A stretch of DNA of 64,000 nucleotides from Ylistrum balloti. Its lineage: Eukaryota. A program made the position numbers and the translations under genes. Each line of letters starts with the position of its first letter. Positions within the stretch are counted from its first letter, which is position 1. The notes under the pieces were generated by a model. The model made no database searches. It was not told where the DNA came from and saw nothing but the letters and a program-made list of their open reading frames with translations. Shown in pieces: positions 9,808-26,645 of the stretch. The stretch lies in NCBI RefSeq assembly GCF_031769215.1, contig NW_026782121.1, positions 1-64,000 of the forward strand, read 5' to 3'.

Positions 9808-11166
9808 TTACGCCCTCGATCCGTTGTACTGTATCACCCATTGCACAGACGGGTCCGAGACAGACGTTGCCTTTCCATGTATCCAGCCAAACCACGTGTC
9901 GGACATGCTCAGAAAATGAACTGGCCATCGCCTGGTGGAGAGAATATACACGGAGTCTTTGTCCTGAACATTGAAGAGATTCCACTCGCCTTCTCTGCCA
10001 GGCTTTCCTCGTCTGACCTCCACCCACTTCTTATCGTCATTCCTCATAACAACATACCAATCCTTCTTATCTTGAGGGCTAATGTAGTAACAGGAAGATC
10101 CCTCTTTCTTCAGTAAGACGAAGTTGTGTTTTGTTTTGTCCAGTGGTCTTTCCAACGAGGATTTCAAGGAACGGAGACATACTGCTGGTTTTGTGTCGTG
10201 TGTTGCAAACCAATTCATCCATTTCACAGTGTTCATGACAACTGGTACCTTATCCAGATTGTCCATTGTATAGAAATCCTTGTAGCCTTCAATGAATTTA
10301 AAAGTGAACGGCCAACGGTCAGGATCAAAGAATGAGGCAAACCGAACATGTTTTTGGTTAGGGAGTACCAACGATTTTATCAAGTTCCTGTCCCGCTCGT
10401 GCTCACCTTCCATTCCTTCCGTGACACCTTTTGCCAGGCGGTCAGAATGTCCTGAGGATATAAGCAAAGCGTAAAACTCCAGCATGACGGCGTCACGGAG
10501 AATTGCAAGGTGACAGTACATGTCGACGAACTTGGTAACTCTCTCGCTGTACGTGGACAGTTCTCTCTCTGATTGTGTTGTAGGCTCGTTTTCCATCAAA
10601 GAAAAAATTCTTGATTCTACTTGTCCCAACGTTTTCACGCCGTTCTTTATGTCAATCATATTGATTACATCCGATATTTCACTTCTGTTTGGACACTCGT
10701 CAGAATCAGAGCTCACACCAATAAGAACGTCATGTGCAAAGGAAAACACTCGACATGCGCCATCTACATCGGCTTTCATCACATCATCTCCAAAGGAATC
10801 AAGAGTTTTAGCCAGTATATCAATTACATTAGCGCTCTGAAGACCTCTCGGATTTTTATCTATAGATATGAAAATGGAACGTATAAAATTTGCAAACTCC
10901 TTTGCTGCGGGTGTCAATAAAGGCACTAACTCCCGAACAGCAGACACGATGGAAATCAGTCCATACCATTTTTTAACGATGTTCGGGTCAAGCATATCCT
11001 TGACACCAATTCCAATACAACCAAATTGAGCGAGAATTGTTTTCAAGTTTCCTTCAGTTGTCGACTTGTATTCAAGACTTTTGGCAAGTGCATTAGTAAC
11101 CCTTTCTTTCCCCAGATCGTGTCCAATCTCTTGAAGTTTTCCAAATACTGCATCAGCATTTGCCAT
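9808..11166 (-). CDS. CfTX/CaTX/CrTX (jellyfish toxin family)-like protein, 452 aa, single coding exon, no signal peptide
   Basis: Intact ORF. It is collinear with CfTX-1 as I recall it: DMYCHLAILRDAVMLEFYALLISSGHSDRLAKGV vs ELFTDLCSLRDLILLDLYQLVATPGHSPNIASGI; KADVDGACRVFSFAHDVLIGV vs QEALYGVKREYAVSKAFLDGV; NTVKWMNWF vs SNVHWPNYF; VYILSTRRWP vs IYLLSSKESP. A splice acceptor (ttcttttacag) lies 10 nt before the ATG, with the AG at 11177-11178. Confidence 0.8.
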   Translation of the reverse strand: MANADAVFGKLQEIGHDLGKERVTNALAKSLEYKSTTEGNLKTILAQFGCIGIGVKDMLDPNIVKKWYGLISIVSAVRELVPLLTPAAKEFANFIRSIFISIDKNPRGLQSANVIDILAKTLDSFGDDVMKADVDGACRVFSFAHDVLIGVSSDSDECPNRSEISDVINMIDIKNGVKTLGQVESRIFSLMENEPTTQSERELSTYSERVTKFVDMYCHLAILRDAVMLEFYALLISSGHSDRLAKGVTEGMEGEHERDRNLIKSLVLPNQKHVRFASFFDPDRWPFTFKFIEGYKDFYTMDNLDKVPVVMNTVKWMNWFATHDTKPAVCLRSLKSSLERPLDKTKHNFVLLKKEGSSCYYISPQDKKDWYVVMRNDDKKWVEVRRGKPGREGEWNLFNVQDKDSVYILSTRRWPVHFLSMSDTWFGWIHGKATSVSDPSVQWVIQYNGSRA

Positions 11167-11419
11167 GATGCTCTAGCTGTAAAAGAAAGGCGAATTATAA
11201 AAAAGGCGAACTTTGAACTTCAAATACCATCTAGGGTTAATTAAATCTGACCGAAACATACAAGCTAATTATGTTTTTCTTATTATATAGTATATATAAA
11301 TACTAAAATGACTCAGTTCAATGGAAGTCCTATACGTTAAACTATTGTGAATATCTAGCAGTTAAGGTAAAAAATTAACAAAAAAAAAAACATAAAATAA
11401 AAAAAAATAGCACTAGTAG

Positions 11420-24381: not shown

Positions 24382-26585
24382 GAGGGTGCACTATCATAGT
24401 TAGGTCCAATTTGTGACACCATGTTGTAGGAAATCATGCACACATATCGTTTTAATACTGTAACATGAGTGGTAGACGACTCGTAGTAGTTAAATATTTT
24501 ATCTCGATGTATATGAATAGAATATGTCATTTATGTAAGAATGGGTGTGGGATGGCTCTCCGACCCATATTCATTCCGTCGCGACGGGGACATTTTTAAA
24601 GGGCAATCAAGTGAAGCAACGTATAGCTAAAGTTTGTTTGTAATTAGCCATTTTGTATTCAGTGTGTTCTATCGCTGGATGGTGGTTTGAAGATTCTATA
24701 ATACATATTACTTAAATGTTTGTCCAAAATGTGTTTCTGATATTTGATTTACCTACTTTAAGATAACACGATGACATGTCATCTGTGTGTGTGTATACTA
24801 GATCAACACCTGTATAGATAGCACTACGTAAACAGCACCACACACATAAAAGATATGAAAAGCAGACATTGGCAAGTATGAGTTTTGTATGTCTACAACC
24901 ACATCAAGTACTTTTATGTATGACGGTCAAGCGTTTAGGTCTGTTATATTATCTTAAGGGACGGAATTTATACTTACCTCTATCTTGTTACCTTTGGAGC
25001 TCTCCGATTGAAAATTTCAAAACGTTATGCAATCATTCTATAAATAGATGTGACTCGTGACGTTATCAACCAGTAACCCACTGCTGAAATGGGGTGCCAA
25101 TAGGGAAGTACCAGGGAGGTGATAAGGATTCCATATGTGAGTGCACCAAATGAACCTGTGCCAGAAACATCAGGTTCCCTACTGCCGTCATTAGCAATCA
25201 GTTGAAACGAAAGTAGATCTATTTAGAGAATGAGAAGTGATTAAAAATATCGGCCGAGTTCACTTAAAAGACAAAAGTTCATTACCTTTGCTCTATTTAA
25301 AAAAAAACGGTGATAATTTTAATTCAAATTATCTCATATCTCCTGTGAATGATACTCACAAACCAATCCTTCAGGCTGGATTTTAAGATGGGAACTGAAG
25401 ATATGATTGAAAAATCAAGCAAGTTGTAAAAAAGATAAGGTTTTCATAAAGTGACTGATATTGAACATTTGCGTGTAAGTGTTTGATAGAGAATGCTTTT
25501 GGTTAAGAAATGCACGCCAAATGTTATGATTTATCACTATCTAGACAGTCTACCTTTACAATTAGTTCAAAATTTGAACTTTTTAAGATAATTGATATCA
25601 ACCTAAAATTCAGACAACTGTATTGATTGAACGGGGCAACGAATGGATATATGATATAAGAAATTAATTATCTAGGTCAGATTTAGGGTACTTTACGGAA
25701 ATTGAATAATGAAATTGGAATTCAACTAAATGTAGAATACATATTGTTACAGTGGAAGTAAAATTAAATAGAAATAATATCAAAAATTATTACATGCAAT
25801 CGAGTATATAAAGAAATTCTGAGAATTCTTAGAAACTATGATTAATAAAGATTTTTCAAATATTGGAAAAGTTATCAGCCCCGGCAGCAAAAGGCCTCTA
25901 GAGATGGGTTAAAGAATTTACTATTAAAAGATAAAATTTGGTGGCTATCATCAAATAGATCGACAGAGTATATTTAGTCGTTGCTTATAATACTGGTTTG
26001 TTAATTCATTGTGTTTCAAGTTAAACTATTAATTGTTCTAGATAATTTAGGTTCATTGCTCCACAAGAACCAAACACATAGCATGTCAAGAGGTCAACTG
26101 ATTATCTTTCAGACAAGTCCGGCGTGATTTTTAATAATAATCGCAGTGTAAGAGCAGTTGCATATAAAATGTCCCTGTCATAGGTACTTTTTCCCGAGAC
26201 CCAAACCCGGTAATTTTGTCCTAACTAAAATATTTTGTCATTGTGACATAAACTAACTTTGGTACATTATAAAATTGAGCTCATTTTTATGATTGGGACT
26301 ACTACAATGGATAGGAAATAAGTGAACAGAGACCTACCATTGACCAATTGTTTTGATAGTAATAGTGAATTTGCTTAGATATATATACTGTTAAGATACA
26401 GTTATCTCATTGTGCTCCGATCTTACGCCTTCATAATTCACACCAGATTAGTTACAAGCTATTCTACAGTAAAACGTAACTATAAAGCAGAAGTAGACCA
26501 TACTCTTAGATTTCTAATAACTATACTTAATGTAAGAACAATAGATGATATCACAGCCAGTTTTAAGAACAAATAATTACATATT

Positions 26586-26645
26586 CTTACCCGGTGTAGA
26601 GTACGTTGTATGCGCGTACCTTATCGTCTTAACAGGAAGTCCCTG
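26586..26645 (-). promoter_or_regulatory. Putative non-coding first exon, splice donor and core promoter of the left toxin-like gene
   Basis: The donor GTAAG (plus-strand cttac at 26586-26590) is followed on the plus strand by AGTACGTTGTA..TACC..TCGTC..AACAGGAAGTC. The same arrangement occurs upstream of the second paralog at 34451-34511. ACAGGAAGT is an ETS-type motif. Confidence 0.55.

Follow-up and report, generated by a model that had tools for sequence, protein, structure and literature searches.

Relics of mobile elements that lie within introns are usually oriented antisense to the gene that harbors them. Known cases of antisense relics with a role in silencing include the single-strand clusters of PIWI-interacting RNAs (piRNAs), such as flamenco in Drosophila, and the piRNA-producing endogenous viral elements (EVEs) of mosquitoes. 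In molluscs, piRNAs are present in somatic tissues and haemolymph, and the piRNA clusters of the oyster are 32-fold enriched in Polinton sequence (PMC6128900). For the family-B DNA polymerases (PolB) of insect Mavericks/Polintons, the published order is a finger followed by a POLB2 domain (PMC5803895); many phyla of invertebrates have been reported to carry protein-primed copies of this kind (pPolB; bioRxiv 10.1101/2023.08.22.554363). Here, we describe a locus of the scallop Ylistrum balloti in which a fragment of such a polymerase occurs four times, antisense, within the inferred first intron of a gene from a family named “toxin CrTX-A-like.” The window under study comprises the first 64 kb (64,000 nucleotides) of contig JAUZWB010001180.1 (assembly GCA_031769215.1). 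As detailed below, we consider it probable that an old, dead Polinton-type fragment in this intron was multiplied by a recent microhomology-mediated duplication and by unequal exchange, and that it has no selected function.

Extent and regularity of the tandem array

Self-BLAST of the window delineated a head-to-tail array at 11139-26008, made up of 4.00 units of ~3716 bp each with a spacing of 3715–3717 bp; the initial annotation of this DNA, made by a reader of the letters alone, had described it correctly as 4 x 3.7 kb. The units are 99.4–99.7% identical: neighbors share 99.7% of their positions, and the outermost pair shares 99.4%. A four-way alignment contains 26 real variable columns. 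Only 3 substitutions separate units 2 and 3, and the private variants fall nearly all in units 1 and 4. A genuine array would be expected to look like this, with its inner units homogenized and its edge units divergent. Microhomology of 3–4 nt is shared by the left and right breakpoints, and all three internal junctions are identical. The array had been placed wholly between the donor and the acceptor of the intron. Most of it does lie there, but its left edge (11139, or 11143 allowing for the microhomology) falls within exon 2, inside the coding sequence (CDS).

The regularity of the array raises a question: could it be a product of assembly, with one unit or some other number in truth, arising by mis-assembly or by the joining of haplotypes in series? 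Units this similar are hard for assemblers, particularly when the inner ones are nearly identical, and a single contig in our collection carries the gene. However, the internal junctions are identical and match the flanks by clean microhomology, the private substitutions of the edge units are distinct and do not represent homopolymer errors, and unique sequence surrounds the array on both sides. We thus regard an artefact of this type as unlikely.

A decayed polymerase fragment in each unit

Every unit contains ~1.8 kb of polymerase relic (7.24 kb summed over the four), in keeping with the ~7 kb of antisense polymerase sequence that had been estimated beforehand. The relics are on the plus strand, opposite to the host open reading frame (ORF), as had also been claimed; their coordinates, like those of all principal features, are collected in Table 1 and represent the outer bounds of local tblastn alignments. 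In these alignments (E down to 1e-56), each unit matches approximately residues 515–1250, i.e. the C-terminal ~730 residues, of relatives that are ~1250 amino acids (aa) long. The relic extends to the C-terminus of the relatives, lacks the N-terminal ~500 residues, and covers the region called DNA_pol_B_2 by Pfam in the relatives. Instead of an intact frame with exonuclease and polymerase motifs, the plus strand of the unit offers a series of open stretches in shifting frames, with at least 3–4 frame changes and ~13 stops per unit; it is ~130 codons short of the matched part in the relatives. By these features, the relic reads as a pseudogene fragment. The counts of breaks obtained by tblastn are nearly equal in all four units. 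Because the units have nearly the same breaks, the polymerase gene was dead before amplification.

The identity of the relic emerges by transitive homology. When single-frame pieces of the relic were compared with Pfam, no polymerase was found at E ≤ 1, only a weak finger of the Endonuclease_7/FYVE type; open pieces from the minus strand of the unit had no Pfam match. The PDB yielded no polymerase by sequence, whether it was searched with two pieces of the relic or with a profile built from 14 full-length relatives. An exhaustive search for relatives with the best-preserved single-frame piece (89 residues) retrieved 3570 proteins (best E 1e-23), many of which are 1,200–1,300 aa long and are matched near residues 520–640. 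All 14 of the long relatives in the profile carry an Endonuclease_7-like finger, and some have N-terminal C2H2 fingers as well. In a spider relative (P0060), residues 583–1027 match PF03175 (DNA_pol_B_2) at E 8e-19, and the unit aligns to residues 536–916 of this same protein; several close relatives carry precomputed PF03175 assignments. The similarity of the relic to family-B polymerases is thereby established through its relatives.

When the polymerase half of the closest long relative served as the query of a word-indexed search, at least 7921 proteins were retrieved (E ≤ 1e-10), from bivalves (Pecten maximus, Argopecten, Mytilus, Pinctada), gastropods, cnidarians, and spiders; one of them bears the name “PolB [Parasteatoda house spider adintovirus].” The best direct match to unit 3 is a genomic copy from Pecten maximus (E 9e-96, 49% identity), and a protein named adintovirus PolB aligns with that unit at E 3e-58 across residues 484–1217 of 1220. 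At the protein level, the relic is at most 49% identical to any relative found. Taken with the published architecture (PMC5803895), these matches uphold the Polinton/adintovirus-type assignment made in the initial annotation, and the relic appears to derive from a protein-primed family-B polymerase of the Polinton/Maverick/adintovirus type.

Is the polymerase accompanied by the rest of an element? Pfam searches of the unit’s open stretches on both strands revealed no integrase, capsid, ATPase, or protease family, and the unit has no long open stretch outside the relic. No inverted repeat of at least 120 nt is present anywhere in the window; hence, there are no terminal inverted repeats (TIRs) at the relic. 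A complete or near-complete element was rejected on these grounds, i.e. for want of companion genes and terminal repeats. PolB-like sequence was found neither elsewhere in the window, including the intron of the host gene’s paralogue, nor at the loci that hold the host gene family in Mizuhopecten and Argopecten. The relic is a lone gene fragment and not an element.

The host gene, its paralogue, and the copied splice acceptors

The host gene (gene 1) and a paralogue (gene 2) are both on the minus strand; only these two copies were found in the window, and additional ones were rejected. In both genes, an acceptor AG preceded by a polypyrimidine tract lies shortly ahead of the ATG, by 10 nt in gene 1, exactly where the initial annotation had located it, and by 17 nt in gene 2. 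The ORF listed for gene 2, of 483 aa, extends upstream across this acceptor. Equivalent acceptors 10–17 nt before the ATG also occur in Mizuhopecten and Argopecten, making four loci in all. At the other end of the intron, the ~50 nt preceding the gene 1 donor have a conserved counterpart upstream of gene 2. Each of the two blocks terminates in a GGTAAG donor, and two 11-mers are confined within the window to these blocks, with equal order and orientation; the introns of the two paralogues are otherwise unalignable. At the Argopecten locus, a 615-nt intron in the 5′ untranslated region (5′-UTR) is skipped by a transcript-like contig from Logan that is 89% identical to this locus: the contig tracks the genome to a GT donor and restarts directly after the conserved acceptor AG. 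The donor and acceptor shared among the relatives are those of a two-exon gene with a 5′-UTR intron.

We accept for gene 1 a model in which exon 1 would be non-coding, the intron would run from 26590 to 11177, and exon 2 would start at 11176. Exon 1 and its donor had been proposed to occupy 26586-26645. The donor, a GT following the block conserved in the paralogue, is retained and sets the 3′ end of the exon at 26591; the 5′ end at 26645 is provisional. The 5′-UTR of the relative’s transcript did not map onto the window, nor was the exon-1 block of the window’s genes detected ahead of the Mizuhopecten or Argopecten genes, where it has presumably diverged too far. Because exon 1 is non-coding in this model, protein searches on the host gene used exon 2 alone.

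With a non-coding exon 1 and a 5′-UTR intron, a pre-mRNA initiated at exon 1 would run antisense through all four relics. The same structural inference had been drawn earlier, and the exon-1 block and the 615-nt Argopecten intron now lend it support. The location of the array’s left edge has a second consequence: since it lies inside exon 2, a stretch that extends from the acceptor through the leader and the ATG to the eighth codon recurs in each of units 2–4. The three copies are identical through the polypyrimidine tract, AG, leader, ATG, and 8 codons, and the stop that ends each short ORF arises at the duplication junction. Because the interior units carry these acceptors, a transcript from exon 1 would pass three decoy 3′ splice sites on its way to the genuine acceptor. 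Donor-like sites following a decoy are encountered only >1 kb downstream.

The copied start codons could be viewed differently, as parts of a working promoter located within the unit, immediately ahead of the ATG. What was multiplied fourfold would then be a promoter with its start codon and not intronic cargo, and the interior units would yield short read-through transcripts. Indeed, every unit has an AT-rich, TATA-like stretch ~120–135 nt ahead of the ATG, and each interior unit has an ATG of its own. Yet it is a polypyrimidine-AG acceptor that has been kept at this place in gene 2, Mizuhopecten, and Argopecten, and the relative’s transcript is spliced exactly at that acceptor from an upstream exon. 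Further, an exon-1-like block with its donor is conserved upstream of both paralogues, even though their introns cannot be aligned. We consider an internal promoter improbable and retain the model in which transcription would start at exon 1.

What kind of protein does the host gene encode? Homologues of gene 1 in Mizuhopecten, Pecten, and Argopecten were found at E 1e-157 to 1e-197, and all of the relatives are from pectinid scallops. The names that these proteins bear in NCBI and UniRef (“toxin CrTX-A-like,” “CaTX-A,” “CfTX-1”) refer to jellyfish toxins, a family that has been described as cnidarian-specific (PMC8214413). The scallop family resembles the CaTX/CrTX/CfTX toxins in these source-given names and in size (~450 aa); a low-confidence AF2 model (mean pLDDT 46) suggests that its N-terminal half (residues 1–267) may be helical. 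A Foldseek search with that model was uninformative (best E 0.14). Within the limited reach of word-indexed searching, no cnidarian protein was returned by a single-sequence search or by a family profile search, the latter yielding six pectinid proteins; the polar N-terminus of the host protein has no hydrophobic leader. It has no match in Pfam and no sequence match in the PDB. The label “toxin CrTX-A-like” of gene 1 thus comes from database names alone, and the “putative immune pore-former” of the initial annotation is a hypothesis, not a finding. The naming of this scallop gene family is thereby revealed as unverified.

Some additional observations on the family were made. Within their first 75 codons, the CDSs of the two paralogues (9811-11166 vs. 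31336-32721) share 74% of their nucleotides (63% at third positions), compared with 96–99% in the last ~225 codons (96–99% at third positions); the near-identical 3′ half suggests that gene conversion may have occurred. In Mizuhopecten (L003, 15020-19617), a second CrTX-A-like paralogue (517 aa) follows the first, 3.6 kb farther downstream; as its gene spans 4.6 kb, it apparently has an intron within the CDS, unlike the others.

The window has other features. A 371-aa ORF at 2614-3729 (+) encodes a Tc1/mariner-type transposase, in which Pfam recognizes the domains DDE_3 and HTH_Tnp_Tc3_2 (E 2.6e-13). A minisatellite with 40-bp units (~20–30 units, 65–85% alike) occupies 27450-28710, ~0.8 kb upstream of the candidate exon 1 of gene 1, and the 189-aa ORF running through it has no Pfam match. 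Further minisatellites with units of 20–62 bp are located at 41312-41621, 42710-43131, 46072-46761, 48602-50657, and 61693-64000; the one at 48.6–50.7 kb has a very strong skew of C over G. A dispersed repeat (29786-30490 and 36362-36845; 60–67% alike, equal orientation) flanks gene 2 on both sides. Scanned over its full length for Rfam families and tRNAs, the window had no match. Its sole run of Ns is at 52948-53127.

Table 1. Principal features of the locus, in window coordinates
Feature	Position	Strand	Basis and remarks
Array unit 1	11139-14855	.	self-BLAST
Array unit 2	14856-18571	.	self-BLAST
Array unit 3	18572-22288	.	self-BLAST
Array unit 4	22289-26008	.	self-BLAST
PolB relic, unit 1	11422-13229	+	tblastn; Endonuclease-VII-like finger and polymerase half, 5′-truncated
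PolB relic, unit 2	15137-16944	+	tblastn; break counts as in unit 1
PolB relic, unit 3	18844-20661	+	tblastn; one frame change more than units 1 and 2
PolB relic, unit 4	22561-24378	+	tblastn; break counts as in unit 3
Gene 1 CDS	9808-11166	-	ORF list; complete and intact, 452 aa + stop, ATG at 11166; whole coding sequence in exon 2
Gene 1 exon 2, 5′-UTR	11167-11176	-	read directly; 10 nt; acceptor AG 11177-11178, polypyrimidine tract before it
Gene 1 intron 1, inferred	11177-26590	-	15,414 nt; donor and acceptor, with family intron from transcript vs. genome
Gene 1 candidate non-coding exon 1	26591-26645	-	3′ end set by GT donor 26590-26589
Decoy, unit 2	14854-14895	-	acceptor AG, 10-nt leader, ATG, 8 codons, stop
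Decoy, unit 3	18570-18611	-	content as in unit 2 decoy
Decoy, unit 4	22287-22328	-	content as in unit 2 decoy; first acceptor met from exon 1
Gene 2 (paralogue) CDS	31333-32721	-	intact ORF; 462 aa from ATG 32721
Gene 2 intron 1, inferred	32739-34455	-	1717 nt; no similarity to array unit
Gene 2 candidate exon 1 block	34456-34511	-	conserved with 26591-26641

Origin of the array and its relation to known systems

The history that we favor would have begun with a dead fragment of a protein-primed polymerase sitting antisense in the 5′-UTR intron of one of two neighboring CrTX-A-like genes. Long after that, in the very recent past, head-to-tail copying would have produced four units of a 3.7-kb segment that took in the bulk of the intron together with the 3′ splice site, the 10-nt leader, and the initial 8 codons. 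The likely route is a microhomology-mediated duplication followed by unequal exchange, which would account for the near-identity of the inner units and the private variants of the edge units. The intron would have lengthened from ~4.3 kb (about 4.26 kb) to 15.4 kb in the process. Through the three decoy 3′ splice sites, each with its 8-codon ORF, a fraction of the transcripts may end up in non-productive forms; the effect of the array is most likely neutral or mildly harmful. In this account, we infer the order of events and the lack of a selected function, whereas the array, its edges with their microhomology, the identity, decay, and orientation of the relic, the breaks common to its copies, the exon layout of the gene family, and the decoy stubs are observed features. 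A neutral recent duplication had been named at the outset as the null explanation, and a young microhomology-mediated array of a relic that was broken beforehand speaks in its favor.

The initial annotation had itself advanced a more elaborate idea: upon induction of the host gene, the intronic array would supply, from a single strand and from within a gene, antisense or PIWI-type small RNA directed at Polinton/adintovirus-like elements. A pre-mRNA started at exon 1 would carry the full 7.24 kb of antisense polymerase sequence, and the oyster data cited above place both piRNAs and Polinton-rich clusters in molluscs. In Mytilus, one of the top haemocyte-specific transcripts bears the name “Toxin CrTX-A” (PMC4581086). 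The relic also varies less between units than does the rest of the unit, and the minus strand of the unit is devoid of AATAAA, albeit not significantly so. Against these points, the relic is old, and with its low protein identity to the relatives found, it is doubtful that it would be complementary to a live element. Introns are normally degraded once they have been spliced out, and they do not typically serve as piRNA precursors; because antisense is the default for intronic relics, the orientation carries little weight. Neither the paralogue nor two other scallop loci contain the relic, and the splice acceptor and start codon that were copied along with it look accidental. There is no inverted copy for the formation of double-stranded RNA (dsRNA), and a hairpin dsRNA was rejected because the window contains no inverted copies. 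Apart from its orientation, the locus itself yields no support for a small-RNA source of this kind, which strikes us as very unlikely, and we give equally little credence to its stronger form, in which the relic would serve as an antisense or piRNA source within the pre-mRNA of a haemocyte-expressed gene and its copy number would have been raised by selection. Were small RNAs to arise from the relic, an inducible host gene would be linked to the silencing of Polinton-type elements in a mollusc.

Several observations weigh against the neutral history. Between-copy differences number 4 in the 1811 bp of the relic vs. 18 in the 1625 bp of the right-hand part (11420-13230 vs. 13231-14855 in unit-1 coordinates; Fisher p = 0.001); this ~5x rarity of differences in the relic is not predicted by a purely neutral, uniform model. 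The copy number was drawn from one assembly, and the transcription start and the use of the decoy acceptors are predictions from the DNA sequence. Finally, the enrichment in the oyster clusters (PMC6128900) would keep a small-RNA role conceivable on principle, slight though we judge its chances to be. Nonetheless, we prefer the neutral duplication of a dead fragment, and the finding is largely ordinary. Its value is that of a well-resolved meeting of two common processes: the decay of an intronic element and a young microhomology-mediated duplication.

How does this locus compare with the systems introduced above? Like the PolB of Polintons, Mavericks, and adintoviruses, a lineage that is very abundant in invertebrate genomes, the relic has a finger followed by a polymerase, and it is homologous to those proteins; it differs in being only the C-terminal ~60% of the gene, in being broken, and in lacking companion genes and TIRs. 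With the piRNA clusters (flamenco, mosquito EVEs, and those of the oyster) it shares relics that are antisense to the host transcription unit. In contrast to those clusters, it resides within a spliced intron of a protein-coding gene, and it consists of one relic type in four young copies as opposed to a graveyard of many elements. The array comports best with intragenic tandem duplications that are mediated by microhomology and expanded by unequal crossing-over: it shares with them the head-to-tail units, the integer copy number, the 3–4 nt of junction microhomology, the homogenized inner units, and the divergent edge units. It departs from this class in that the copied segment includes a 3′ splice site and a start codon, and the three extra copies of both constitute a natural test of the choice that the spliceosome makes among identical acceptors.

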